Part shown: one piece after another, positions 29,171 to 63,711 of the stretch
How the letters are laid out: every line of letters begins with the position of its first letter
Position numbering within the stretch: the first letter of the stretch is position 1
NCBI RefSeq assembly: GCF_947568905.1
Contig: NC_079164.1
Coordinates: forward strand, 106,950,001 to 107,014,000
DNA from: Ostrea edulis
Taxonomy: Eukaryota
Reading direction: 5' to 3'
Length of the DNA stretch: 64,000 nt
Notes under the pieces: model-generated
Databases searched by the model: none
What the model saw: the letters and a program-made list of their open reading frames with translations, nothing else
What the model was told of the DNA's origin: nothing
Translations under genes and position numbers: made by a program

Positions 29171-29826
29171 TATGGAGCGCCAAATTAACATAAACTCAAA
29201 TAATTGAAGATATCTTCAATTATTTGAAGATATCATCAATTCAATTATTGCTCTCTTTAATTGAATTAATGCGCACATTAAATCAATTATTGCTCTCATC
29301 AAATGAATTAATGCGCGCTTCAATTCAATTATTGCTCTCATCAATTGAATTAATGCCAGTCTGATTAAAACCAGCCCCTTCTCCTATCGTCGTCAGGAGA
29401 GGGGGGGGGGAGGGGCTGGTTTTAATCAGACTGAATTAATGCGCGCATCAATTGAATTAATGAGAGCAATAATTGATTTAATGCGCGCATTAATTCAATT
29501 ATTGCTCTCTTCAATTCAATTGATGAGAGCATTAATTTCGTAGAAATATTGCTCGCAATAATTGATTTAGAGCTCGGTATAAATAATTTGATGATCTCTT
29601 TAATTCAATTGAAGATATCTTTAATTATTTACATTGCTTTTGTATAAGGAATTAATGCGCGCATCAATTCTTTTAAAGAGAGCAATAATTCAGAGTTGAA
29701 GATATCATTAATTATTTGAAGAGATCTTTAATTCAATTGTTGCGCGCATCAAATGAATTGATGATATCTTCAAATAATTGAAGATATCTTCAATTCATTG
29801 AGTTTATGTTAATTTGGCGCTCCATA
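29171..29826. mobile_element. IS3EU-like non-autonomous element, 656 bp
   Basis: 29-bp TIR tatggagcgccaaattaacataaactcaa; TAT...ATA termini; 6-bp TSD tggtac; partial relatives near 23950-24032 and 28262-28420. Confidence 0.8.
29357..29433. mobile_element. 77-bp hairpin MITE with 9-bp TSD
   Basis: Perfect 23-bp TIR cagtctgattaaaaccagcccct; TSD aattaatgc. Confidence 0.88.
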
Positions 29827-31564
29827 TGGTACAGACTTGAAAACCTTGGTCAATCTTTTCCACTATTGAATGGTGCATATTGTGAATCTAAGTCACTGTT
29901 TGAACAGAATGTTCCGACATGGTACAGTACCACCAAGTTTCTCATCAATAAGCTAGATAGTGTTCAGAATTTGACTTGTGCCAAAGTACATAAATTCAAA
30001 AGTGAACTGAAGGATTGTTTATTCAAAAATTATATTAAGGAATGGAAATCACAAGCTACTTCACAATACGACAAAAAATTAAATTGCTACATATCTTTTA
30101 AACAAAACTTTGGTCAGGAGAAATATTTAGAATTACTCAAAAACTTTGAGCAGAGGAGAAGTTTTACACGCTTTCGCATATCGGCACACAGATTAAATAT
30201 TGAAAGAGGCCGATACCAAGGCATTCCTAGACAAGATAGACACTGTACTAGATGTAATACCGATACACTTGATGATGAAAAACATTTTTTACTGTCATGT
30301 TCTCATAATGCGGAAGAAATAAATGTTTTATATGAATTGGTGAATAACTACTGTAAGAACTTTTGTAACATGAATAATGATCAAAAGTTGATCTGGCTCA
30401 TGACAAACGAAAATGCTCAAATACTCAAACAAATCAGTAAAATGATCTTCAAAACAGGGATATAGAATACTAAGGGTTGTATAACTATACTTGCATGTAT
30501 AATTTACTCCTTGTCGATTTCAAATAAACACATCTATAAATAAGCTAGCTGTCTCGAATACTTGGGGTACAAGACTGCCAGTCTGATTGACTTGGCAAAG
30601 GCACCGTCCCTTGGTACCCCCTGTATTCGTGACAACATTTTATAATACTGTTTCATTTTCCTACCCATGTAACATCCTTGTTGTACATCGCATTTTCAAT
30701 CAGTACTATAAGCCAGCTCAAGACCAACATCAATGTAGAAATGGTATACATCTGTTTATCGTATTGTGTAGTTCTATTTAATTGTATACAATACTCATGT
30801 AAGCTGTCTTGAATATATAACATCTGTATATGGTATGCATGTGTACATATTGTGGTATCATGTATTTATTTTTGGTATACTATAAATAAGCTGTCTTAAA
30901 TACTTAGGGTACAAGACTGCCAGTCTGATAGACTCGGCTCAGGCACCGTCCCCTGGTACCCTCTGTGCTTGTGACAACATTTTATAATATTGTTTTACTT
31001 TACTTCCCATATAGCACACTTATTGTACAGTACATTTCCAATCAGTATTGTGATGAGAATTCAATACCTATGTCAATGTAGAAACCCTTAACATGTGTTT
31101 ATGGTACACATGTGTAAATTGTCATATCACTCTAGTTATAATGTTTAATTGTTAATTGTTAATTTGTATATGCCCCCTGAGGGCCCTTGATTGGTGAATA
31201 AATAAATATAATAATATATAACGTTATTTTTGCGATTTTTAAAAATCACATGTCATGAAAATACAACCCATCCCTTTATTTATATTTGCACACACAAACA
31301 CACGGACTATGTACACAATCATTTCTACAGGTAGATCATGTATACAATGTGCATGGGTTTTTAATATTCAGCACTATGAAACACACCCCTCCCCGATTTT
31401 TGCAAATTATTGGTTCCGTCGTAGCATTTTCACAATATTTTTCTAAATCATGACTAAAATCAGGCCATTTCTAAAGATTTTGCGAGCGGATCTAAGAATT
31501 TGATTTAGAGATCCGCCTCTGCTGTCTGTAGGTATTTTTGCGCAATACTGTAGGGATAAAATGT

Positions 31565-47829: not shown

Positions 47830-49038
47830 TAATACACACAATGAAGTATTATAAAATGGATGTGAACTTCACAAGAATGTAATCAAATTTAACAAACAGA
47901 ACAAGACAAAATGCTTAAAAACATTTCACAACACATGGAATATTTTTTTAATGGAATCTGTTAACATTTATGAAAACAGCTATAGAATGGAAAACAAATG
48001 TAAACTTAAAAAAAATGTTGTACACATTGCAACTTGACTAGTTTTAAGTTTAACTGCTTTTTTTCCCTCCCAATAACAATATCAGACCACTACATGTAAA
48101 TAAAAGACTAGGAAAGTATGTTTTAAGGCTAGTTATGGATTTCATGTTTGGTTACCAAAATTAAAATAAAAGTCTCAATGAAATACATATGATTACCATT
48201 GTATCATAACAAATGAAGCTGTAATTTTGGGTTGGATTGTTGGAAGACATGCATAAATGCTGACATGTAATGAGAATTTGTGACTCTACATGAATACCTG
48301 TAACTTCATCAAATGGGGAAAGTTTGCATATACATGCCATTAAAAACCATATACAATATACCGAGTGGTGTTTTTTTTATGTTGGTAAAGGTTTTTGGGA
48401 ATGGCTGTCAAAAATTAATGTAGCCTGGAAAGAAGTGCACCGCATCTAACTGATCAGGACACTCACAAACTAAATTGTTATCTGCTGTCTGACTAGAACT
48501 AAAACTAAAAGACATGGGTAAAACACAGACATGCGTAAAACACATGGCTCAAAAGACGATACACCTGTCTGCTCAAAAACTGGTTCCACGGTGTCACTGA
48601 TCAGAATGGTTCCCCATTTTGTTGTGGATAAAAATGGTAGCTTGGCCAATCAACAACAGTTCACTTGGCACTAACTACCGTTAAATCCATGAGTATGTAT
48701 ATACACGCAATGTAGTTAATTGTGTGAAATCATCTGTTAAATGTCTAGATCATATGGAATTCAAAATTGTAACTTACTTAAAGTCCCATATTGTGCTCTA
48801 TACACACACTTTGGATACTCAAATCACAAAAGGTCTTCCCAATCCATTCCATGCAAGTTGTTTTGTCTGCATCAAATTGAGAAGTTACAATGTGGTATGT
48901 CCATCTGTTATTAACGTTAAAGTACAGAAGTCTTTCTTGCAATACCGGACATTGCTTCCAAATACAGATTTTTTGTCTCCAAACTTTTCTGTGGACCATC
49001 AAGAAAATTCAAAGCAGAACTCCTTATGGGTTCCAAAA

Positions 49039-49209
49039 TCAAATTTCTGTTCTGAATTTCTGAAATCCATTTCTTAAAAATTCATTACTTGTGTTGGGAA
49101 GCAATGGTCTTTCTGAATTGTGGGTCATCATTTCATATTTTTCCTTTCTTGCTCGAAACAGATACTCAGATGGCTCTTGCAAGTCTGCACTTGAGAAATA
49201 TTTCTCAAC
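49039..49209 (-). CDS. Gene 3 putative terminal coding exon (VEKYFSS...RTEI*)
   Basis: TTTTCTATTGATAG acceptor in phase 0; TGA at 49041-49039; possible frameshift at the A5 run 49076-49080. Confidence 0.6.
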   Translation of the reverse strand, partial: VEKYFSSADLQEPSEYLFRARKEKYEMMTHNSERPLLPNTSNEFLRNGFQKFRTEI

Positions 49210-52200
49210 CTATCAATAGAAAATTCACTTGATTATTCATGATTTTTTAAAAGATATACCTGGTCATAATCAATGGCACTTGTACACTGCAATACATGTG
49301 AATTCCAAGGTTATTTGAGCCACGACAAGAGATGTTTGTAAAACACATACCCCCCCCCCCCCCCCCCACCATGGTGCAAAATTGAAAAGGGTTATACACA
49401 CACATCATTTAATTGATAGTAGTATATCAATATATAAATATTGCATGTATTTGAGGGTAACATTGAAAATTTTCACCCCGAGAAAACCATTGTCAACCGA
49501 GGTGTAGCCGAGGTTGACAATGGTTTCTCAAGGGGTGAAAATTTCAATGTTACCCTCAACTGCATGCAATATTTGTTTTATTATACTGAATGTTATGTAA
49601 ACTGGAAAGCAGAAAAACTTACGTCTGTTTACATTTGATCAATCACTGTCGTGCGATATTTCGTATATCGATGCGGGTACTCGCGTTTATTACAAACGCT
49701 CAAACGACGTCGTCTAGCAATCTACGGCGAACCGTACGCGCATAAATTTGACGCATGTGATAATTTTTTATAATATCACCCGTTGTCAAGTACTGTTACC
49801 CGTTGCTAGATACTATCACCCTGGGTCGCGTGTTTTCTGTTCTCAGAGGGTAACAATATGTATTTTCAAATGTTTCTCGACCAATCAGATTCGAGTATTT
49901 TACATGAAAGTATAATAATTCAAAATATTGAGCAGACAATATCTTCCTATGCCAAGAGTGGATTGACCATGTGACCTAAAAATCAATAGGGGTCATCTAC
50001 TCCTTATGCTGTACCAGTGTACCAAGTTTGGAGAGTATCAAGCAAATAATTCTTAAAATATAGAAGACAATATATTACTATGTCCAATTCAACCATTGAC
50101 CTCAAAATCAATATGGGTCATCTCCTGAAGATGTACCAGTGTACTAAGTTTGATGTCTGTCAAGCAAAAGGGTTATCAAAATATTGAGTGGACAGTATAT
50201 TATTATGTCCAGTTTGACCCTTGACCATATGACCTCAAAATCAATAGGAGTCATCTTCTCCTGAATATACACCAGTGTACTAATGCCTCGTTCACACGAA
50301 GAATTTAATTCACATTAAACGTAAGTTAATGCGAATTAAATCTGAACCGCGCTCACACGGTAATTTTAATGCGCATTAGTTTACTTCGAATTAAAATTTA
50401 TGTAGCTCTGTGTGAACGCAAAGCGAAGCTAATTTGCATTAAATGTACATGCATGCGTAATGGCAAATTTGGGTCACATGCATCATACCCGTGGTCAGCT
50501 ATATATATTAGTTTTAGTTTTATGCGAAAAACTAATCAAAATGATAATAATCAATAAAAAAAAATGTACAAACAGTATGTCATTGGATAATGTCAGACGT
50601 AAATCTGTGTTCTGCATAGCATACTGAGCAATACACATGGAAGGAATTGCATTTAAATACGACAAAAATGTTTTAAATAAGTGATAATATGATTTTCTCT
50701 TTTACGTTTTAACAAATATGCTGCTCATTGTTATTTATTTTTTTTTTTTTATATAATATGACGTCATAGTAGACTTATGATACGTATCAGTAATTAAAAA
50801 TTACGTCACAACAGTAGTCAGCAATAATATATATAGGCCTAGTGTTTTGAACAATGAATTCTGTATCAACACATAATTCATTAAAATATCTATAAAATAA
50901 TTTTCAATAATATAGTCTATCCTTTAATTTAGACATGCATACGAATTTAATGCGCATTAGTTTCCCTCGCATTAAATATTACGGCCGTGTGAATGTTATC
51001 TAATTCGAATTAATTTAATGCGCATTATTTTACTTCGCATCAAATTTAATGCGAAGTAAAATTCAATGCGCATTCGTGTGAACGAGGCATAAGTTTAATG
51101 TCTGTCAAGCAAAGGGTTCTCAAGATATTGAGCAGACAGTATATTCCAATGTCCAGGTTGACTCTTGACCTTTAAACATGTGACCTCAAAAGCAATAGGC
51201 ATCATCTCCTGAAGATGTACCAGTGCAGTACGGCTGGGACGATTCAGGGTTAGCTCGATTCGGTTCGGTTTCGATTCAGATCAGAACGGTTCGGTTATTT
51301 TCGATTCGGGTCATGTTAGGTCCAATTTATCTAATGACAGCACAAAAATTAACAATTTTAATGAGTAGCATATTTGATTTGATTTTATTCAAGTTATATA
51401 ACTATGCCGTCATTTGTAAACATCATATCTATCTATAATGGCATTTTATAACTTTGATAGAAAAAAGAAAACACTGACAGTCTATTAAAATTTGTTATAT
51501 TAATGTGCTGCATAAGTTTTGGAATATTAAACAAATCTATAGTGAATCAAAAATGAATATGATATTGTTTTCATTGATATGTAAAAATTCAACAATTCTG
51601 TCAATTGAGAGTCTGAAAATTTCTCCTTTATTGATTTACTTCTCTCATCTTAACTGTCAAATCTGTGTCATTACCTATGATGTTGATTTACTCCACCATT
51701 GACAGAAATGCTATATGTCATGTAAAGATATTCTGTTGGTATCTGAGTGGCAAAAAATGCCAACTCTCAACACAGTAGTGATTTAAATCTCTGTTGCATA
51801 AAAAAACACGTTCTGCACAACACTCGGACGCCATGTTAGTTGTTTTGGTGTATGTAAAATCAAAACCGAACCAAACCGAAAACTGGAATTTGTAATCGGT
51901 GCATCGAATCGAATGGTATGAATCGCGATGCATCAAAATTTCCGGTGCACCGCATAGTCCTACAATATACCAAGTTTGATGTCTGTTAAGCAAAGGGTTC
52001 TCAAGATATTGAACAGACAGTATATTCCTATGTCCAGTTTGACCTTGACCTTTGACCATGTGACCTCAAAATCAATAGGGGTCATCTTCTCCTGAAGACG
52101 TACCAGTGTACCAAGTTTGATGTCTGTCAAGAAAAGGGTTCTCAAGATATTTAGCGGAGAGTATATTCCTATGTCCAGTGTGATCCTTGACCTTTGACCA

Positions 52201-55200
52201 TGTGACCTCAAAATCATTAGGAGTCATCTTCTACTGAAGATATACCAGTGTACCAAGTTTGATGTCTGTTAAGCGAAGGGTTCTCAAGATATTGAATGGA
52301 CAGTATATTCCAATGTCCAGTTTGACCGTTGACCATGTGACCTCAAAATCAATAGGAGTCATCTTCTACTGAAGATATACCAGTGTACCAAGTTTGATGT
52401 CTGTTAAGCGAAGGGTTCTCAAGATATTGAATGGACAGTATATTCCTATGTCCAGAGTAGATTGACCCTTGACCTTTGACCTTTTGAACTGAAAAACAAT
52501 AGGGGTCCTCTTCTACTCATAACCAACCCACATATGAAATATCATAATCATCAAGTGAATGGTTCTCAAGATATTGAGCGGACAACATGTGGTCGACCAA
52601 CCGACAGATGCAAACCAATATGCCCCTCTTCTTTGAAGGGAGGCATAATTAAGTATACCTAAAAATTCAAAAATAGTATCACAGAAAGCGTATACAGTGC
52701 CCCCCTCCCCCATTATAAAAAATGGCCAAAAGATGTACCGCCACAAACATCTGCTGTTTAAGATTTAGTAGTATTTAGTGTTGAGCCCCATTATCCTTTA
52801 AGGGTCCTCTAGATATCAATTTAAGTTTACAGTTGGTCTACTAAATAGAAGTCCATTTTCTGAAAACAAGTATGTCTTTCTTTACACTTTCATGGTATAT
52901 TTTCCTTCATAGAGTGCACATAATATATTAGCACAGACATCTGATTGTACGACGACCCTTGACCTTTGACCATGTGACCTCAAAATCAATAGGGATCATC
53001 TTCTCCTGAAGATGTACCAGTGTACCAAGTTTGATGTCTATCAAGCAAAGGGTTCTCAAGATATTGAGTGGACTGTATATTCCTATGTCCAGTTTCACCC
53101 TTGACCTTTGATCATGTGACCTAAAAATCAATAGGGGTAATCTTCTCCTAAAGATGTATCAGTGTATCGAGTTTGATGTCTGTCAAGCAAAGGGTTCTCA
53201 AGATATTGAGCAGACAGTATAATTCTATGTCCAGTTAGACCCTTCACCTTTGACCATGTGACCTCAAAATCACTTGGGGTCATCTACTCCTTAGGATGTA
53301 CTAGTGTACCAAGTTTGATGTCTGTCAAGCAAAGGGTTCTCAAGATATTGAGCGGACAGTGTCTTCCTGTGTCCAGAGTGGATTGAATTTTTAACCTTTT
53401 GACCTGAAAATCAATAGGGGTTCTCTTCTACTCGTAACCAACCCATATATGTAATATCATTACGATGAAGTCAATGGTTCTCAAGATATTGAGCGGACAA
53501 CATGTGGTCTACCGACCGATCGACAAGTGCAAAGCAATATGCTCCTTTCTTTAAAGGGGGGCATAAATATGAGAGCCCAATCACTCACCATTCAAAAGTT
53601 ATGAGCAAAGTTCAAGCTTCAGACAAAGTGGACAAAAACAATATGCCCCCCACCCCCCTGACTTAAGTCACAGGGCATAAATAAATTTAATCATCATAAC
53701 TTGGAACCATTTGCATGATTTAGTATGGTCCTGCTATTCTTTGAAAAAAGAATTTGTTTTAATTTCCTGTATATTCCAACATCATACTTCAATCTCCTAT
53801 TATGACCCACAGCACCTTACCTCTGGGGCTCCTAAATTGAACAAATTTAAACTATAGATTGTTTTTATGAAAAACAGTTGTCTCCCCAGCTTCCCAAATT
53901 GGAAGTGCTCCAAATGAAACCTCCTCCCTTTAATGTACTGCATGGTATGGAGGAGAAAGCATGAGCAGGAACATAGACAATATGAACTTCAATAAGCCAC
54001 ATAGGAGAAATGTGCACAAACTATTTTACACCCTCCACCCCTCAGATGCAATATAACTTTAAGGACAACAATTGGATCCTCCTGTCCCTGCGAAATGCAC
54101 ATCTGTAAATGGCATTGAAGTATCATACAAAGTTTCAAATCTTATCGGATAAGCTATATAGGAGAAGAAGCGTTCACAAGCTATTTTAACATCCTCCACC
54201 CCCCTCAGATTCACTTTAACTTAGGAAAATAATTAGATCTTCCTGTCCCGAAAATATGCACATCTACAAATGGCAATGAAGCATTGTACAAAGAAGAAGA
54301 CGAAAATGTGAAAAGTTTACAACGCCGACAACGCCAACAGACAAATTTTGATCAGAAAAGCTCACTTGAACCTTTGGCTCAGGTGAGCTAAATAGTCTGG
54401 AAAACTGATAGTTCATGCTATTTATCTAAGTCCCAGGGCTATAAAGAAGTGAATAATCAACGGACCGCGACCAAATTCAAACTTGAACTGTAACTTGTTA
54501 TGGCAAAGCAATGTACCAAATATCAAATATCTGCAAGAACAGAGATAAAAGTGCGAAAAACTGAACTGGCGGATGGAGCACACACCTAAAGTCGCCATTG
54601 TCGGTAGGGAACTAATAATTTAAAGGTTCGTAACTTTCTACATTAAAGTCCTCCAGAAAAATTTGCCTGTTGCATTAATATACATGTATATGTACGTGTT
54701 TTTTAACCTTGTTAAGACAGACATCTGGGAACAGTTTACACAGGTATGATGCCTCTGTTGGCTTTTGCTTGGATAGAGGATTATCTGCCAACTTCAACAA
54801 TTCCTTACGACTGTACACTATTGGATCCACCTCCTCCAAGTCATCAGAATCTACAATATCCCTCCACAGAGCTAGAAACCAGACAAAATTTGTAAAGCTC
54901 GTCATGGTATAAATAACATTTCAACAGATCAATGAGAGGCCCATGAGCCTAATAGTCACATGAGTGTGCACATTGTTTACTCTTTAGACTGGCTACCTAC
55001 CATGGCTACACCAAGAAACAAAATCATTTGAAGTTGCGAGTTTTCAGGTCCCTTGGGGCTTTAATGAATGCTTAAAGGTGTGTTAGGCACTAGTGGAAAA
55101 TATGTTAAAAAGACCTGAACAAGACACATTTTTTTCTGCATGATAAATCTAAGGTTTTTATAAGGGGTGGATTTGTAGCTCTCTGGTATGTCCCAATATT

Positions 55201-57196
55201 TTCCCAGAGAGCTACAGATCTGCAGCTAACTTAACCCTACTCTGGGGTCATAAATTTCAGTTTTGGTATACGGATCATTGCTCTTATAATGACTGCTTGA
55301 TGTCCAAAAGTAAAGAATAAAATTTATAAGATATAATGCATTTTCAACCAACTCAGCTCCACCCTAGGGCCTGAACATTGAGGTCATAAATTTCACAGTT
55401 TGGGTATAGGGGTCATATCTCATTACAATCATTACAACAGTTTGACTGATTGATGTCCAGAAGTAAAGACAATTTCAAAGATACAATGCATTTTCTCTGT
55501 CCAACTTGGCCTGAACCCCCTAAACCCAGGGGTCATGAAATCCACAATTTTAGTAAAGGGTTCATTGCTAACTGCAATGCAGATAGTTTGACTGCTTGAT
55601 GTCCATGAGTAAAGAAGAAGACTTTTGAATTTGATAGTTTTAGTAACACCCCTCAGGCCCCCTGGAGGCATGGTCCATGGAATTTACAATTTTGTTTCCC
55701 TTAACCCAGATATTAAACACTAAAATTGGTTGAAATTCGTTTAGCTGACCCAGAGAAGCTGAAAACATTTTTAAAAATCCCAACCGATGTACAATAACTA
55801 ACAAAAACAGTCATAATAGGTCACCTGAGTGATTCAGGTAACCTAAAAAGCAATCTTTTTTTTCAAACTTTAAGCAGAATAGTAGATATAGAATTTAAGA
55901 AAAATATAATGATTATAAGAAAGTTTTCACCCTGTTTCTGATGTGAATACAGTGCTCACCTAATTCCTCAATACACACAGCGGTATTATACTTCTTGAAC
56001 ATCCTTCTTCTTCCAGAGGCCGAGTAAATACTTTTGGGGAGACCCTTCTCCACATCAGCTATAAGTGAAGGATCACTTCCAGGTCCTAAAGGATTTCTCT
56101 CCACTACAATCTAAAAATTCAAAGCACGTAAAAGATTCATCTTTTGGGCAGTTAAACCATCATTGTAGAATATTCTGTAAAGGAACAGATATCATCTTCA
56201 CTGTTTCTTATTAGATATGAATCCCCCCCCCCTTTAAAAATTGCAAAGAAACATATTAAACTTGAACTTTCGATTACATGTGTATTTTTAAAATATCAAT
56301 ACAAGTTAACAATTTTTTTTAAACATAAACAGTGTCCCTTGTTTAAACAGAAAACTTCACATTACCTTTGCATTTCCACCTTCAAAATGCACTTTGTGAA
56401 TAAGATGTTTTGGTCGCTGGTGAACAACAGTTGAGTTGTCACTGCCATCTTCCCCAGACACCGTGGAAATTCTGCCTGGGATTCCAAACCCATGACAAAC
56501 AGAAGGTTTCCTCCAGGAATCCTGATCAGCACCATTTAAAGTAGGAAACAGTCTACTTTCATTTGTCCTTCGGCTGAATTTCTCATCTTGTCCCCTTGTC
56601 CATTTATCTGTCCTATCATTAATCACTCCAAACCCTGTCCTTGTGTGATATCTTTTCATTTCATTGTCTTTGAGTTTGGTGAATTCTGTACTTATGCCTT
56701 GACAGATCTCGCTGATCTTATTCTGTTGTCTTACTGTCTCACTCCGGTGCGATTCTGTACTTATGCCTTGACAGATCTCGCTGATCTTATTCTGTTGTCT
56801 TACTGTCTCACTCCAGTGCGATTCTGTGGAATACAGCGACTGATTGTCTTCCTTTGGTGTAGGTTGTCCAAAATGTTTGGACAGAAATTCATGGCTATCC
56901 TGGAAAATGGAACTACATTGCATATAACTTCATAATGTTTTTTTCAATTTACTCAGATTTAAGACACTTTACTGTAAACTACAATTATTTTCTTGTTAAG
57001 GTGTGGTAATCCACCTTGGTTTTGCACATTAAATATCAACTACACAAGACTAAAACATGGCAATTTTGAAAAGATCACCTTAGCATTTAAAACAATAAAC
57101 ATGCTGTGCTATGCCTTTGTACCAATACCCTATGTGGGGTCCATTGCACATTTGAACTCCATACCTAAGATATTGAATCTATCTAATTAATTTATT

Positions 57197-57800: not shown

Positions 57801-60800
57801 CAGAATGACAGAATTACAAAATGACAGAATGACAGACAGGATAAAAACAATATGCCCCCAGATCTTCTATCTCGGGGGCATAAAAAGTAATGGGTTATGC
57901 AGAAATTCTGCAACATCAATCAATATCATAAATCTTTACACTGTAGGGTGTATATATACGTGTGTGTGTGTGTATGTGTATGTGTGTGTGTATATATATA
58001 TATATATATACATGTATTATTAAAAATAATATCTATAGATCGAAAATATTTTCACTATCAATGGATATACCCAGCCCTGAATCTCCAACCCAGGGGGCCA
58101 AGAATTTGATACAGACCTCTCCAAACTCAAAACATTTATGCATCCAGTTTATTTGCAAGACATTCAAGAGAAAAGAAATAAAAAACTGGCTTGAAATTCA
58201 ATCTCTAAATGTTCTTGATCTCTCAAAGTATCCCCATCCTAATTTCTTCCTCTATACAAGTAAGCAAATTCTTCTTTCTCTCATTCTCAAAAGTCCTGCT
58301 ATACATAATCTCTTAAAATTTACTCAAGTATGTATTTGTTACCTGGAGATGATATTTGTTTACACCAGCTTATGACTGAATTGGCACTGCATAGACCATA
58401 CCCCTGGGATTACCATTGCTTTGAAAAGGTAAGCTTAGTAGGGCTTCATAAGCAATGCTTCCTCAACAGGTACCCCAACCTGGGGATTAATTGGCATGTC
58501 AAATGATAAGCTGCAATTATCAATCCACCAAAGCAAATTTTACATCACTTTGTGTGCAAGTCTCAAGCTTTACAGGCCTGCATGGGTAATGAATTATCAC
58601 TTTTTTTCGTAATTTTCATTTAAAAACACAGAATAACCCTCCCAAAAATTTAGAAATTTTTTGTAAAATCGTGATGTTTTGGATGAACAAACTAGTTAGA
58701 AGCCACAAAAATATTCCTGCCATACACTGGTAATCTGCTCATACAAGAACATTATAGCCATTATCATAAATACCAATGTTTACTCAACAATTCGTGTAAT
58801 TAAAAGGTTTGCAAATCAATGAATGATCTGCGAAGATTCACGCCTGCATCCTAAAAGCAAAGCATCTGGTTTTATGCCTGCATACAAATCGCAGAATTTC
58901 AAACATGTACCTTACAGACAAAATGGGATTTCTTGAATCTGTGGAATTTTGACCCCACAGAAATAAGTACATCTATAGTAAACCCACTTCATATCTACTA
59001 TATCTAATGGCTCTTGAGAAGTTGAAAAAGTTGAATGTGAAAAGGTTACAGATAATAGAGCCACCAGAGTCAGAATCAGAAAAACTCACACAAGTGTTGG
59101 ATTCAGGTAAGCTAAGAAGAAATCTAAACCAAAATTTTCTATACCTTCCCCAACTCTATCTCTTGAGTTTGGTTTGACAGCACACTGGTTGCTTTTGTCC
59201 CTAAATCATCTGGAAAGCAACAAAACATATTTATATAACATTCCACTACTCTATCAAAGTCTAAATTCACCATTCTGTAATGAAAAGTCTTACCTTGTTC
59301 TAAATTTTCAACATGTTGTGTCTTCCTGCAATTAACAAAACAGTATACACATTTCACACCACTGAAAAAAGGTATTGTATACAATTTTTTAATTTCAAGC
59401 TTAAGAGTACATTTTGATACATTACTACAATTTCATACACTTCTGCTGTACTGCAGTATACTTGCTTTGAAGACTAAAATTAAACAAAGAATATGCATTG
59501 CCTGTGGGTAATAATGACTCCAGACAGACAGACAGACAGACATACCCTGGACAAAGTTATTCCTGTGCATCCTCCATGCTATTCTGACAACACATGATGT
59601 ACCTAATATTTTTCAGCAATAATATCTCTGTGTCAATGTATAAGATTGCATGACAAAAAGCTTTCTAGACCAAAGTATACCCAACAAAAACTACTCACAA
59701 ATTCTCATAAAGGTCCTGAATAAACGAATCCTCACTGTTCCAGAGGACGGTATCATCCAGGTCCCCATACCCGGAGTCAACACTCTATAAAATAATCAAT
59801 TTCATATGTCTGCAATAAAGCCCCCCTGTTTTTCTCTCATATGACAAGGTAATCTTGGTGAACTATTAATTGTAACAATATCTTGGTGAACTATGTTAAA
59901 AAGTGCATGTACTTACAATTGCTCGACAAACTTCCTTTTCCTTAGTTTGACCTCCATTTTCCAGCATCCTAGTTGCATCAGACACTGTTTCATTCCTTCG
60001 ATCATCCTGCTATAAAAATCTTAGTTAGAAACACAATGACCAGTTGTTTCTCACAATTTGGATACTTTGCTGATCTTTTCTGTATATTTATAATGAAAGG
60101 TTTCACTTTAACATTCATACATCATGTAAAGGAAATTCTTCAGGTATTGTAGCCCATACTCTCTTCCTTATTTCCAATATCTGCTCTACTGCTTTCTTCA
60201 ACAATAAAGTAAAACAAGATACTGTTAAGCTTCACACTGTGGGAAAGTCCCATTATTGCAAATCTGATATTAACATCTGACCTTTGGCCCCTCTATTTTC
60301 ATTTTGTTGCTGTGGCAATATTGCCTCATATCATTTGAAATTCAAATTCTTTACACATCTGATTGTGTTAGATATTTTGTCATCAATTCTGTCTCCATAA
60401 ATGAGTACTGAATGATAGGAACACCTAATTACTTCACGGTAGCACTTTATCTGACATAATGATAGGAACACCTAATTACTTCACGGTAGCACTGTATCTG
60501 ACATAATTTTGATGAACACCTAATTACTTCACGGTAGCACTGTATCTGACATAATGATAGGAACACCTAATTACTTCACGGTAGCACTGTATCTGACATA
60601 ATGATAGGAACACCTAATTACTTCACGGTAGCACTGTATCTGACATAATGATAGGAACACCTAATTACTTCACGGTAGCACTGTATCTGACATAATGATA
60701 GGAACACCTAATTACTTCACGGTAGCACTGTATCTGACATAATGATAGGAACACCTAATTACTTCACGGTAGCACTGTATCTGACATAATGATAGGAACA

Positions 60801-62806
60801 CCTAATTACTTCACGGTAGCACTGTATCTGACATAATGATAGGAACACCTAATTACTTCACGGTAGCACTGTATCTGACATAATGATAGGAACACCTAAT
60901 TACTTCACGGTAGCACTGTATCTGACATAATGATAGGAACACCTAATTACTTCACGGTAGCACTGTATCTGACATAATGATAGGAACACCTAATTACTTC
61001 ACGGTAGCACTGTATCTGACATAATGATAGGAACACCTAATTACTTCACGGTAGCACTGTATCTGACATAATTACTTCGCGGTAGCACTGTATCTGACAT
61101 AATTACTTCGCGGTAGCACTGTATCTGACATAATTACTTCGCGGTAGCACTGTATCTGACATAATTACTTCGCGGTAGCACTGTATCTGACATAATTACT
61201 TCGCGGTAGCACTGTATCTGACATAATTACTTCGCGGCAGCACTGTATCTGACATAATTACTTTGCGGTAGCACTGTATCTGACATAATTACTTTGCGGT
61301 AGCACTGTATCTGACATAATTACTTCGCGGTAGCACTGTATCTGACATAATTACTTCACGGTAGCACTGTATCTGACATAATTACTTCACGGTAGCACTG
61401 TATCTGACATAATTACTTCACGGTAGCACTGTATCTGGCATAATTACTTCACGGTAGCATTGTATCTGACATAATTACTTCACGGTAGCACTGTATCTGA
61501 CATAATTACTTCACGGTAGCACTGTATCTGACATAATTACTTCACGGTAGCACTGTATCTGACATAATTACTTCACGGTAGCACTGTATCTGACATAATT
61601 ACTTCACGGTAGCACTGTATCTGACATAATTACTTCACGGTAGCACTGTATCTGACATAATTACTTCACGGTAGCACTGTATCTGACATAATTACTTCAC
61701 GGTAGCACTGTATCTGACATAATCTTGGCATCAGAATATGTAGTGTTTTCTTAAGTAGTTTGAAATCTTAGCTCTTTGGCACAATTTTACTTGTATGAAT
61801 AGAGATTTTGAAATCTTAGCTCTTTGGCACAATTTTACTTGTATGAATAGAGATTTTGAAATCTTAGCTCTTTGGCACAATTTTACTTGTATGAATAGAG
61901 ATTTTGAAATCTTAGCTCTTTGGCACAATTTTACTTGTATGAATAGAGATTTTGAAATCTTAGCTCTTTGGCACAATTTTACTTGTATGAATAGAGATTT
62001 TGAAATCTTAGCTCTTTGGCACAATTTTACTTGTATGAATAGAGATTTTGAAATCTTAGCTCTTTGGCACAATTTTACTTGTATGAATAGAGATTTTGAA
62101 ATCTTAGCTCTTTGGCACAATTTTACTTGTATGAATAGAGATTTTGAAATCTTAGCTCTTTGGCACAATTTTACTTGTATGAATAGAGATTTTGGTGCTT
62201 CTAATTTTGGCAAAATATCCTCATCCACTAAACAAGCCAAACTTTTCCTACACCAATATTTGAAAACAAAACACTTTCAGTTAGTTGTTTGATTATACAA
62301 AGGGAAATCTCGAATCATATGACATTAGATAAAGAGTGAATTGGCACTGCTGTATAGTTGTTTGATTATACAAAGTGAAATCTCGAATCATATGACATTA
62401 GATAAAGAGTGAATTGGCACTGCTGTATGGGACAGTTTGCTGTCTTGTCAGGATACTTAAAGAAAAGTTGATTTTCTGGACAAATCATCAAAACATATAC
62501 CAACTTAGGGAATCTAAATCTATTTGCATACAAAAGAGAAACATAAAACAACTTTCAGTGACTTGTCATGCAACTTTTCTGCAGAAACGGACAAACATTG
62601 TACAAACCTCATCTGAGCCTTTGGTTACAGTGAACAAAGAACCAACAGAAAGCATACCTTATTATTTATGGTCAATTTCTCTGAGCGTTGACTTTTTGAT
62701 TGTCGATGCAGATCTAACGTTTGTTGCAACACAGAGCGAACACCATCATCAGCACCATCTCTTTTTAAAAACTCCTCAATACATGCTAAGCAGCTTCTGA
62801 TGAAGG
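49039..62806 (-). CDS. Uncharacterised multi-exon gene, candidate eIF4E-binding protein (5' end probably outside the window; 5' exons contain in-frame TGA)
   Basis: Phase-consistent GT-AG chain: 62806-62658, 62247-62175 (TGA), 60407-60282 (TGA), 60221-60121, 60009-59917, 59784-59699, 59325-59294, 59209-59145, 56899-56366, 56110-55960, 54871-54708, 49209-49039. The frame is open from 60330 to the stop at 49039. Confidence 0.65.
49433..49918. mobile_element. Crypton-like non-autonomous element with a ~135-bp palindrome (49438-49572)
   Basis: ~60-bp arms around tcaaccgagg..tagccgaggttga; ttattatac...gtataataa; the family assignment is from recall. Confidence 0.6.
50284..51089. mobile_element. 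PIF/Harbinger-like MITE, 806 bp
   Basis: Perfect 17-bp TIR tgcctcgttcacacgaa; TAA TSD. Confidence 0.88.
51229..51962. mobile_element. hAT-like MITE, 734 bp
   Basis: TA.GG termini; ttcggtt/aaccgaa subterminal repeats; degenerate 8-bp TSD derived from the host cagtgtac. Confidence 0.7.
52930..54615 (+). mobile_element. Head-to-tail stack of truncated HINE-like elements (3' ends near 53546, 53683, 54392 and 54615)
   Basis: Four separate microsatellite-plus-hairpin termini belonging to different families. Confidence 0.68.
54708..54871 (-). CDS. Gene 3 exon with YxxxxLPhi eIF4E-binding motif (YSRKELL at 54815-54795)
   Basis: LWRDIVDSDDLEEVDPIVYSRKELLKLADNPLSKQKPTEASYLCKLFPDVCLNK; TTTCTAG acceptor; AAG|GT donor. 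Confidence 0.8.
54931..55849 (+). mobile_element. Degenerate HINE-like element
   Basis: gagaggcccatg..gtcacatgagt start; ggtcacctgagtgattcaggtaacc hairpin end. Confidence 0.65.
55960..56110 (-). CDS. Gene 3 exon (IVVERNPLGPG...VCIEEL)
   Basis: TTTTTAG acceptor; TAG|GTGAGC donor. Confidence 0.78.
56366..56899 (-). CDS. Gene 3 534-nt exon (DSHEFLSK...GGNAK)
   Basis: Within ORF 56357..56923; TTTTCCAG acceptor; AAG|GTAATG donor. Confidence 0.78.
56684..56821. repeat. In-frame 69-bp tandem duplication inside a gene 3 exon
   Basis: STESH(W/R)SETVRQQNKISEICQGI x2; one mismatch between the copies. Confidence 0.93.
57198..57886 (+). mobile_element. HINE/Helentron-like element with a 146-bp central repeat (about 3 units)
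   Basis: Very similar to 23249-23780 but with one extra monomer. Confidence 0.88.
57960..58010. repeat. (TG)n(TA)n compound microsatellite
   Basis: Seen directly. Confidence 0.9.
59145..59209 (-). CDS. Gene 3 exon (DLGTKATSVLSNQTQEIELGK)
   Basis: CTTTCCAG acceptor; AAG|GTATAG donor. Confidence 0.7.
59294..59325 (-). CDS. Gene 3 32-nt exon (KTQHVENLEQ)
   Basis: TTGCAG acceptor; AAG|GTAAGA donor; phase 2 to 1 fits both neighbours. Confidence 0.7.
59699..59784 (-). CDS. Gene 3 exon (SVDSGYGDLDDTVLWNSEDSFIQDLYEN)
   Basis: TTTTATAG acceptor; TT|GTGAGT donor. Confidence 0.75.
59917..60009 (-). CDS. Gene 3 exon (QDDRRNETV...EVCRAI)
   Basis: TTTTTATAG acceptor (NAGNAG); ATT|GTAAGT donor. Confidence 0.75.
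60121..60221 (-). CDS. Gene 3 exon (SCFTLLLKKAVEQILEIRKRVWATIPEEFPLHD)
   Basis: AACAG acceptor; GAT|GTATGA donor. Confidence 0.65.
60282..60407 (-). pseudogene. Gene 3 exon with in-frame TGA at 60333-60331
   Basis: LIYGDRIDDKISNTIRCVKNLNFK*YEAILPQQQNENRGAK; phase 1 to 1; the following intron is only 60 nt. Confidence 0.4.
60412..61721. repeat. Composite minisatellite: 14 x 47 bp (60412-61070) then 21 x 31 bp (61071-61721)
   Basis: The 31-mer attacttcacggtagcactgtatctgacata equals the 47-mer minus atgataggaacaccta. Confidence 0.95.
61759..62190. repeat. 48-bp x9 perfect tandem array spanning a putative exon/intron junction
   Basis: Unit tttgaaatcttagctctttggcacaattttacttgtatgaatagagat. Confidence 0.95.
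62175..62247 (-). pseudogene. Gene 3 exon with in-frame TGA at 62223-62221 (frame uncertain)
   Basis: GTGTAG acceptor and CAA|GTAAAA donor. The phase-consistent frame reads EKFGLFSG*GYFAKIRSTKISIHT; an alternative open frame reads KSLACLVDEDILPKLEAPKSLFIQ. Confidence 0.4.
62283..62428. repeat. 73-bp direct duplication
   Basis: agttgtttgattatacaaag at 62283 and 62356. Confidence 0.9.
62658..62806 (-). CDS. Gene 3 exon (FIRSCLACIEEFLKRDG...TINNK)
   Basis: Pyrimidine tract plus TAG acceptor; AAG|GTATGC donor. Confidence 0.65.
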
Positions 62807-63711
62807 CTAAACATGCAGAAAGAAAAATATTTTCAATTGATGTTAAAGTAAGATTGTAATCTAGTCTCTGATTGGTCAAATATGAACTAGATTATGCAAT
62901 TTACTTTGTATAATATGGTGTGCTATGGGGACAAACCCCATGACCACCAGCATCCAGAACTACTTTTCTTTCTTACTTTATATTTTACATTGCAGCACTG
63001 TTGCAGGCCTTCTATAAATGGAAAGTCCACGTGTGCAATAAGATACTTGTGTTTGATAAACGAATTGTTCTCTCAATGTCAAGCAAGATGTATAGAATCT
63101 ACTCACTATCGTTATATTTCCTGTATGATATTTGAATAGTAGATTAAAACAAAGATAGTATATTGAAATTAAAGGTATATAAAGTATTTCAAAATTTTGT
63201 CCTGTTCATTTTGAAATACATTTCTCACTGGGAAGGGGAATTGCTTGATCTGCCTCTCAAGGGAAAATTATTTTATTATCAGATGCTGTCACCTAAAATT
63301 GACTCGTGGATCACGATTAGACATTTGCTTATATATGTGCAAGATTTAATATTGGCTAGAATGTTGCATGCAAGGGTAAGTTTTACTATAGTGAAAAACT
63401 TCCATAAAATCAATGTGCTTGATGAAGGTGCCAGTAATATACATTATGGAGGTTGCATGCTAATTTTAGTGCTTTTTCATTTCAGTCTATAGCAATTTGC
63501 TGTGGTTCATAGGAAATAAAAATGACTGCCGACTGAATGTCTACAGGATCTAAAAGTTACGTCACACACTGTCTTCATTTTAAAGTTATAATCTGGGACA
63601 AATCATTCTAACCAATGACATTGGCAGACACTTTGGTCCACTCTGAATCTGGACACACTGTCTACTTTACAAAGGATTCTCAACTACGCATCAGTTAAGT
63701 TACCCAATAGG

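Follow-up and report, generated by a model that had tools for sequence, protein, structure and literature searches.

eIF4E-binding proteins decide which capped mRNAs are translated, stored or destroyed, and they are central to oocyte and embryo biology. Outside flies, worms, yeast and vertebrates, few have been defined. In Mextli (Mxt; Drosophila CG2950 and its C. elegans orthologue), the eIF4E-binding region sits at the C-terminal end, and a MIF4G-like domain followed by a KH domain, both highly conserved, is the defining feature of the family (PMC4573856). In eIF4G the order is different: the eIF4E-binding motif (4E-BM) precedes a full MIF4G domain and is followed by MA3/W2. The 4E-BPs (4E-BP1-3 and Drosophila Thor) are small proteins of about 120 aa, whereas 4E-T (EIF4ENIF1) and Cup are large, mostly disordered scaffolds with a bipartite 4E-BM, which lies at the N-terminus in 4E-T. 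Here we describe an uncharacterized gene of the flat oyster Ostrea edulis whose protein carries a putative bipartite 4E-BM near its C-terminus together with a predicted half of a MIF4G-type helical domain. Literature searches for eIF4E binding in bivalves and for the gene identifier found no paper on this gene or on a protein of this kind, and searches for Mextli in molluscs found nothing relevant.

We examined a 64,000-nucleotide stretch of O. edulis contig NC_079164.1 (positions 106,950,001 to 107,014,000; hereafter the window), which contains no N. The original prediction placed an eIF4E-binding module, resembling those of Mextli and 4E-T, in a minus-strand exon here called exon C (Table 1). 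This observation was confirmed. Exon C is open between an AG acceptor (tttctag/CT) and a GT donor (AAG/gttaaa) and encodes ..LWRDIVDSDDLEEVDPIVYSRKELLKLADNPLSKQKPTEASYLCKLFPDVCLNK. It is spliced in frame to exon D, which follows tgatag and begins VEKYFSS, and the reading phases fit with upstream exons A and B. The gene is annotated as LOC125667385, named only "uncharacterized protein", with seven predicted isoforms of 638-691 aa that match every exon piece exactly. In addition, a 2045-nt assembled contig of a public run (run X6), whose kind is not recorded, lies on 54853-54705 and then directly on 49206-49000, joining exons C and D in a spliced form that uses the second of exon C's two acceptors, at 54850. 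We found no run on record as RNA.

Table 1. Features of LOC125667385 within the window (positions are those of the window; all on the minus strand)
Position	Feature	Encoded sequence	Remarks
49039..49209	Exon D, last coding exon	VEKYFSS...; family-invariant Tyr at +39; poorly conserved tail	Stop codon at 49041-49039
54708..54871	Exon C, predicted eIF4E-binding module	Acidic lead-in; canonical helix Y-S-R-K-E-L-L-K-L-A; elbow D-N-P-L-S; linker; non-canonical S-Y-L-x-K-L-F-P-D-V-C	Two acceptors: 54871 (isoforms X1, X2, X4, X5, X7, adding ALWRDIV) and 54850 (X3, X6 and the run X6 contig)
55960..56110	Exon B	Conserved "GPG box" (V-x-R-x-P-L-G-P-G ... G-R-R-x-M-F-x-x-Y)	Just upstream of the predicted eIF4E-binding module
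56366..56899	Exon A	Residues 353-530 of isoform X1	Fast-evolving, predicted disordered; 69-bp in-frame tandem duplication at 56683-56827
59145..59325	Two small exons (about 59325-59294 and 59210-59145)	Residues 321-352	Boundaries good to 1-2 nt
59699..59784	Exon	Residues 292-320; conserved acidic motif D-S-G-Y-G-D-L-D-D-x-V-L-W-x-x-E-D-x-F	Most conserved island of the protein
59917..60009	Exon	Residues 261-291	
60121..60195	Cassette exon	25 aa	Skipped in isoforms X4-X6
62658..62807	Exon	Residues 186-235; last helices of the predicted MIF4G-like HEAT domain (F-I-R-S-C-L-A-C-I-E-E-F-L-K...)	Residues 1-185 lie beyond the window end

To determine how widely the module occurs, we searched 1.84 billion representative proteins with the 54-aa exon using phmmer. 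Conservation of the motif in other bivalves had been set beforehand as a test, and the search found only bivalve proteins (Ostrea, Saccostrea, four Mytilus species and Pinctada), two bivalve-like exon fragments and one spurious bacterial repeat protein. Word-index protein searches reached only close relatives: exon A found one metagenomic exon fragment, a four-sequence alignment found only Ostrea and Saccostrea, and the Mytilus C-terminal region found only Mytilus. The apparent restriction to pteriomorph bivalves therefore rests mainly on one single-sequence search with a short query and is weak evidence of absence elsewhere. Within the family, which spans three bivalve orders and proteins of 633-902 aa, 17 of 58 module positions are invariant in 9 sequences from at least 7 species. 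The module is one of five conserved islands in an otherwise divergent protein, and dN/dS of the exon is 0.17-0.18 at dS about 1, indicating purifying selection.

The family-invariant residues fall in the register of solved eIF4E-binding peptides. Counting from the motif tyrosine, Y0, R+2 and LL+5/6 (Y593, R595, L598 and L599 in isoform X3) lie in the canonical helix. P+12 matches the elbow tip (Mxt P593, Thor P66), S+14 matches the elbow end (Mxt S595, Thor S68), and L+24 and V+31 match Mxt M605 and I612, the main lateral-pocket contacts (PMC4573856). The invariant stretch S-Y-L-x-K-x-x-P-x-V-C lies at +22 to +32, where a hydrophobic non-canonical motif is expected 15-30 residues downstream of the canonical one. 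The register with Dm Mxt is gapless from Y0 (Mxt Y581) to +31; the Dm Mextli sequence used in the original prediction agrees with every residue number quoted in PMC4573856, 13 positions in all, P599 and P610 not among them. AF2 predicts helices at 595-603 and 613-620, although confidence in the module is low (pLDDT about 40-60). In the extended canonical consensus, position 2 is an invariant Arg, but position 9 is an invariant Ala instead of R/K/Q, and in Dm Mextli the loss of R/K at this position weakens competition with eIF4G.

We next asked whether the similarity to known eIF4E-binding peptides could arise by chance. In the six-frame translation of the window (128,000 residues), plain YxxxxL-Phi occurs 213 times, so the bare motif means nothing. 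However, Yx[RK]xxL-Phi followed by P at +12 and S/T at +14 occurs once, at exon C. Pfam gave sub-threshold hits confined to the 4E-binding motifs of EIF4E-T (PF10477; E 0.073, 12.4 bits over profile positions 1-20, cut-off 28.5) and eIF_4EBP (PF05456; E 0.13, and E 0.013 for Saccostrea over profile positions 48-99; 12.6 and 15.8 bits, cut-off 24). Although the single exon gave no hit at E<=10 in a phmmer search of PDB sequences, a family profile searched against 177,635 PDB sequences gave 11 hits, 9 of them peptides crystallised on eIF4E: 4E-BP1 four times, a designed 4E-BP, Dm eIF4G twice, Mextli 5abu_B (E 0.87, scoring below 4E-BP1) and the Leishmania peptide 5wb5_B, from a Leishmania eIF4E-interacting protein. 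Every hit to a known 4E-BP is individually non-significant (E 0.07-1.8) and is driven by the canonical helix plus elbow. A profile of the elbow plus non-canonical part alone found nothing in the PDB, and one from +3 onward found only plant LRR receptor kinases at E 0.19-1.8. We reject an LRR reading because a single repeat cannot fold and the LRR Asn position is Ser in the other species.

The original prediction described the region upstream of the motif as roughly 350 low-complexity residues with no recognisable MIF4G or KH domain. In isoform X3, 592 residues lie upstream, and they are not only low-complexity. A folded domain is predicted at residues ~133-227, mostly outside the window, and the statement on MIF4G appears to be wrong at fold level. 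Residues 127-227 match the C-terminal half of MIF4G domains, which were the top 8 of 48,161 chains in a structure comparison (Z 10.4-11.2 with the full-length model and 10.6-11.3 with the domain model, rmsd 1.8-3.7 Å), although Z of about 11 lies within the range seen for generic helical repeats. The best Foldseek hits are eIF4GII, CWC22, SLIP1 and DAP5 (probability 0.99-1.0), and the language-model neighbours are clusters of MIF4G and of Pfam CNOT1_CAF1_bind, CNOT1's MIF4G-type domain. Only about 90 residues (4-5 helices) of a roughly 200-residue MIF4G are present, and there is no sequence-level signal. A profile of the domain against PDB sequences showed no MIF4G, only a weak "MI domain-containing protein" hit at E 0.064; Pfam scans gave noise; and an Atlas fold search gave generic HEAT/TPR rows. 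ESM Atlas feature searches gave no usable hit with the exon and only unnamed arthropod clusters at 0.75-0.78 with the whole protein.

The absence of a KH domain, in contrast, was upheld. No KH family was found by Pfam at E<=1 in the Ostrea, Saccostrea, Mytilus or Pinctada proteins, and the AF2 model contains no KH-like fold. We considered a degenerate KH in the GPG box, but L-G-P-G-S is G-x-G rather than G-x-x-G and no helix precedes it. A degenerate KH in the Mytilus I-V-G-E-D-A stretch was also rejected, as it is too short and gives no Pfam signal.

Compared with Mextli, the oyster protein has the same order of parts, with a predicted MIF4G-like fold N-terminal and the putative 4E-BM at the C-terminus, a non-canonical part that is predicted helical, and a small residue at position 9 (S590 in Dm Mxt). 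It differs in lacking a KH domain, in having only a predicted half MIF4G fold, and in its own conserved motifs: a twin basic N-terminal motif, an acidic W/F motif and the GPG box. Its Arg at position 2 is shared with the bipartite Ce Mxt, whereas Dm Mxt has Ile there. No significant sequence similarity was found outside the motif, with no full-length Mextli sequence in the comparison. The 4E-BPs and Thor give the best PDB and Pfam matches and share Y-x-R-K-x-L-Phi, the (S/N)-P elbow, T/S at +14, Pro at +18 and an acidic residue at +20. Ser-Pro occurs at +11/+12 in 8 of 9 family sequences, where counting along the aligned 4E-BP1 peptides places the regulatory S65-P66 site; O. edulis itself has Asn instead of the elbow Ser. 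4E-T has a similar canonical motif (Y-T-K-E-E-L-L against Y-S-R-K-E-L-L) and shares P-x-S-K-Q-(K/R)-P, and 4E-T and Cup suggest a possible role in mRNA storage or repression. However, nothing else of the 663-position EIF4E-T profile matches, the full-length proteins give no EIF4E-T hit, and no Cup-homology domain was identified. Like eIF4G, the protein combines a putative 4E-BM with a predicted MIF4G/HEAT-type domain, and Dm eIF4G peptides are among its PDB hits. Relative to eIF4G, however, the order of motif and HEAT domain is reversed, the HEAT domain is half-size, and there are no MA3 or W2 hits.

Given these results, we favor the view, with a probability of roughly 0.65, that LOC125667385 encodes a mostly disordered scaffold of a family found so far only in pteriomorph bivalves, with a bipartite eIF4E-binding region near its C-terminus and a Mextli-like layout but no KH domain, and that it is probably an undescribed regulator of translation. 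In this model, residues 593-602 form the canonical helix that docks on the dorsal surface of eIF4E, with Y593 and L598/L599 making the contacts and R595 at position 2. The A602-S607 elbow, with P605 at its tip and S607 at its end, would turn the chain downward, and the S-Y-L-x-K-Phi-F-P-x-V-C stretch, with L617 and V624, would engage the lateral hydrophobic pocket. The protein would therefore compete with eIF4G for eIF4E on the mRNAs it is brought to. The predicted HEAT domain, the twin basic motif, the acidic W/F motif and the GPG box presumably recruit partners that decide whether the bound mRNA is silenced or translated in an eIF4G-independent, Mextli-like way. Our analysis establishes the gene structure, splicing, conservation, motif register and fold prediction; eIF4E binding itself, competition with eIF4G and the direction of the effect on translation are inferred. 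The original interpretation, a lineage-restricted eIF4E-binding regulator and possibly a highly diverged Mextli relative, is thus supported, and the predicted MIF4G-like domain strengthens the Mextli idea. Three of its points are not: the gene is not unrecognised, the upstream part is not only low-complexity, and membership of the Mextli family fails on the KH domain.

Among the alternatives, the one that survives best, although it remains doubtful, is that the gene is the true bivalve orthologue or paralogue of Mextli. In this view, it descends from a MIF4G-like + KH + C-terminal 4E-BM ancestor, has lost the KH domain and half of the MIF4G domain, and acts like Mextli as an eIF4G-like activator. 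The order of parts, the fold-level MIF4G matches and the gapless register favor this reading. The missing KH domain, the half-size fold without sequence-level support and the low score of the Mextli peptide argue against it. It is also unlikely, but possible, that the C-terminal block is a short linear motif or folding element for a partner other than eIF4E and that the Y-x-R-x-x-L-L resemblance is convergent or coincidental. The sub-threshold hits, the failure of the post-canonical part alone to retrieve a 4E-BP, Ala at position 9 and the frequency of the bare motif are consistent with this. However, several coincidences would be needed at once: nine of 11 PDB hits being eIF4E-bound peptides, invariant Pro +12, Ser +14 and hydrophobic residues at +24 and +31 at the structurally defined positions, and an mRNA-metabolism type HEAT domain in the same protein. 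A diverged paralogue of 4E-T or of the small 4E-BPs is very unlikely, given the C-terminal motif, the protein length, scores below the Pfam cut-offs and the lack of any match elsewhere in the EIF4E-T profile.

A more speculative and, on present evidence, unlikely possibility is that bivalves possess a KH-less Mextli-type scaffold that seizes eIF4E through its bipartite motif and, through its half-MIF4G domain and private motifs, assembles an alternative cap-binding complex independent of eIF4G. Such a complex would control stored maternal or gonadal mRNAs. This would extend the Mextli principle to Lophotrochozoa and show that the MIF4G + 4E-BM core can work without the KH domain.

A conserved bivalve family that joins a predicted Mextli/Thor-type eIF4E clamp to a predicted truncated MIF4G domain offers a testable candidate for translational control in commercially important oysters and mussels. 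It also provides a name for a set of "uncharacterized protein" entries in at least seven genomes, and a natural experiment on which parts of the Mextli and eIF4G layout are dispensable.

On the minus strand, exon C is an open exon between an AG acceptor and a GT donor, and it encodes exactly the peptide of the original prediction, so the observation holds. Exon D begins in VEKYFSS and runs to a stop codon, and the upstream exons A and B join in phase, with exon B ending in a single G and exon C supplying CT. The window contains no N. To identify the gene, we searched 1.84 billion representative proteins with the 54-aa exon using phmmer, which returned a 684-aa protein with 98% identity. Its cluster names it Ostrea edulis LOC125667385, an "uncharacterized protein" with seven NCBI isoforms of 638-691 aa. 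Exact-match mapping places residues 186-691 of isoform X1 on ten minus-strand exons, whereas residues 1-185 lie beyond the window end. The gene is therefore annotated but without an assigned function, and the estimate in the original prediction of about 350 residues upstream of the motif is an undercount.

Features of the LOC125667385 locus and of its surroundings (positions are those of the window)
Feature	Position	Strand	Description
Coding exons of isoform X1	62807-49042	-	Ten exons, residues 186-691
Exon with the end of the predicted MIF4G-like half domain	62807-62658	-	Last helices, residues 186-227
Intronic satellites	60411-62194		Three long arrays back to back: 47 bp x14, 31 bp x22 and 48 bp x9 (98-100% matches)
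Cassette exon	60195-60121	-	25 aa, variable among isoforms
Acidic motif	59784-59699	-	Residues 292-313; D-S-G...V-L-W-x-x-E-x-x-F
Exon A	56899-56366	-	Upstream exon
Tandem repeat in exon A	56683-56827		69-bp unit repeated 2.1 times, in frame
Exon B, with the GPG box	56110-55960	-	GPG box at residues 533-572, ending G-R-R-x-M-F-x-x-Y
Exon C	54871-54708	-	Acceptor tttctag/CT, donor AAG/gttaaa
Alternative acceptors of exon C	54871 and 54850	-	21 nt apart; add or drop ALWRDIV
LRR-like stretch of the module	54745-54800		Residues +3 to +27
Intron between exons C and D	49210-54707		5.5 kb, packed with tandem 125-142-bp units of a very high-copy repeat
Exon D	from 49209; stop at 49041-49039	-	Preceded by tgatag/; reads VEKYFSS...
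CNOT10 gene	13560-17323	-	Neighboring gene for a CCR4-NOT subunit
Long ORF	12153-12788	+	Looks like a mobile-element remnant; DUF6451 match (E 1.7e-14)
Long ORF	29782-30462	+	Looks like a mobile-element remnant; BTG hit just below threshold (22.0 bits against a cut-off of 23)
Long ORF	2495-2812	+	Looks like a mobile-element remnant

The isoforms differ by the 25-aa cassette, by one Gln at an exon start, by the seven-residue insertion just upstream of the acidic lead-in to the canonical helix that results from the two exon C acceptors, and, in X7, by an alternative last exon. All of them keep the motif. Exon A carries an in-frame duplication that gives a 23-aa repeat in the oyster protein and is absent from the Saccostrea orthologue. 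The assignment of the neighboring gene to CNOT10 rests on a first-exon ORF that matches the N-terminus of human CNOT10 (8bfi_B, E 3e-6), and ORFs downstream of it give weak TPR hits.

We next looked for transcripts. Although no run on record as RNA was found, one sequencing run (X6) contains 89% of the sampled words of exon A but only 27% of those of the exon-plus-intron stretch. When aligned to positions 49000-54950, its 2045-nt contig 25 lies on 54853-54705 and continues directly on 49206-49000, with three-letter overlaps at both joints that are ambiguities (TAG and GTT). The contig therefore shows the 54850 acceptor and the 54708-to-49209 splice. Because the kind of run X6 is not recorded, we regard this as probable rather than certain RNA evidence. 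Within the intron that is removed, contig depths of the repeat reach about 10^6 in the aligned runs, and many internal joints are seen.

Relatives of the protein are 633-902 aa "uncharacterized" proteins of Saccostrea echinata, Mytilus edulis, M. galloprovincialis, M. californianus, M. coruscus and Pinctada imbricata, together with exon fragments on unlabelled contigs. In an alignment of nine sequences, 17 of the 58 module positions are invariant. They read Y-x-R-x-x-L-L-x-x-A-x-x-P-x-S-x-x-x-P-x-E-x-S-Y-L-x-K-x-x-P-x-V-C, followed by a Tyr at +39 that lies in the next exon, consistent with the continuation into VEKYFSS in the original prediction. Along the protein, conservation is concentrated in five islands (residues 1-25, 91-110, 171-210, 285-315 and 525-640), and the rest is at 10-25% identity. 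Comparing exon C with the two fragment loci gives a dN/dS of 0.17-0.18 at a dS of about 1, indicating that the frame is under purifying selection. The fragment loci start the exon at D-S-D-D-L-E-E, so the short acceptor is the shared one, and only the short form is seen in the X6 contig and in the orthologous exons of other species.

To ask whether the motif is more than chance, we counted its occurrences in the six reading frames of the window. Plain YxxxxL-Phi occurs 213 times, so the bare motif carries no weight, but the form with R/K at +2, Pro at +12 and S/T at +14 occurs once, at this exon. Pfam gives only sub-threshold hits, yet these fall precisely on the 4E-binding motifs of EIF4E-T (profile positions 1-20, E 0.073) and eIF_4EBP (positions 49-74, E 0.13; for Saccostrea, E 0.013 over positions 48-99). 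A profile of the module searched against 177,635 distinct PDB sequences gave 11 hits at E 0.23-1.8. Nine of these are peptides solved in complex with eIF4E: 4E-BP1 four times, a designed 4E-BP, Dm eIF4G twice, Mextli 5abu_B and 5wb5_B, a Leishmania eIF4E-interacting protein deposited as "Uncharacterized protein". None is significant individually, but as a set the enrichment is far beyond chance. However, a profile of the elbow plus non-canonical part alone finds nothing in the PDB, and one from +3 onward finds only plant LRR repeats. The statistical signal therefore comes from the canonical helix plus elbow. Without its Tyr-x-Arg start, the module profile resembles one plant-type leucine-rich repeat (L-x-L-A-x-N/S-x-L-S-x-x-x-P-x-E-L) and hits BRI1-like kinases at E 0.19-1.8, a resemblance that we judge to be chance.

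We then compared the module with the structural description of Dm Mextli (PMC4573856). There, Y581 is followed by I583 at position 2 and by L586/L587. The elbow starts at S590 (position 9), has P593 at its tip and ends at S595, equivalent to Thor R63, P66 and S68. A non-canonical helix spans 602-608, and M605 and I612 make the main contacts with the lateral pocket, with an equivalent Ile in Ce Mxt and Cup. Counting from the Tyr, the oyster family has invariant Pro at +12, Ser at +14, Leu at +24 and Val at +31, in the same gapless register. Position 2 is Arg, as in bipartite binders, and position 9 is Ala, a small residue as in Dm Mxt. The same study describes non-canonical motifs in general as hydrophobic, sometimes helical and 15-30 residues downstream, and the family fits this description. 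AF2 predicts helices at 595-603 and 613-620, though at low confidence. In 8 of 9 sequences the elbow reads S-P, which by counting along the aligned 4E-BP1 peptides is the position of S65-P66, whereas O. edulis has N-P there.

Outside the module, Pfam finds no domain in four members of the family. An AF2 model built from a nine-sequence alignment has a mean pLDDT of 44 but shows one confident region, at residues about 141-220 (pLDDT 79-89), which is helical. A domain-only model reaches a mean pLDDT of 77.5. In an exhaustive structural comparison against 48,161 PDB representatives, both models place MIF4G domains in the top eight positions: SLIP1/MIF4GD 2i2o, CWC22 (three entries), DAP5, yeast and human eIF4G HEAT1, and UPF2 MIF4G-2. 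Z is 10.4-11.3 and rmsd 1.8-3.7 Å over 79-103 residues, and all eight align to the C-terminal half of the MIF4G domain. Paip1 is also among the top eleven. Foldseek independently ranks eIF4GII, CWC22, SLIP1 and DAP5 first, with probability 0.99-1.0, E from 0.011 and rmsd 1.6-2.1 Å. Language-model features of residues 125-235 point to clusters of MIF4G and of Pfam CNOT1_CAF1_bind, the MIF4G-type domain of CNOT1, at 0.84, which is a lead only. Sequence profiles do not see MIF4G, and a Z of about 11 is within the range of generic helical repeats. We therefore call this region a predicted MIF4G-like half domain with moderate confidence. Only its last helices lie in the window, which is why it could not be seen in the original prediction. 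Three further short motifs are family-invariant: a twin basic R-A-P-R-x-x-K-L-x-K-P-x-P at residues 9-22 and 93-107, outside the window, the acidic motif and the GPG box.

Taken together, the analysis, which is entirely computational, establishes the gene structure, the conservation of the module, its register and the fold prediction, while eIF4E binding and any effect on translation are inferred from them. On this basis the core interpretation of the original prediction, a lineage-specific eIF4E-binding regulator or a highly diverged Mextli relative, is supported as an inference. The literature searched contained no paper on this gene or on molluscan proteins of this kind, and all database names are "uncharacterized" or "hypothetical". 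The layout is a predicted MIF4G-type domain, then a long disordered region and a C-terminal putative bipartite 4E-BM. Among known proteins that is the layout of Mextli, and the reverse of eIF4G. However, the Mextli family is defined by highly conserved MIF4G-like and KH domains (PMC4573856), and the KH is absent here. We therefore do not assign the family to Mextli, and common descent with it is a possible but unlikely sub-hypothesis. The inferred effect of the protein could lie in either direction: repression or storage would resemble 4E-T and Cup, whereas activation would resemble Mextli.
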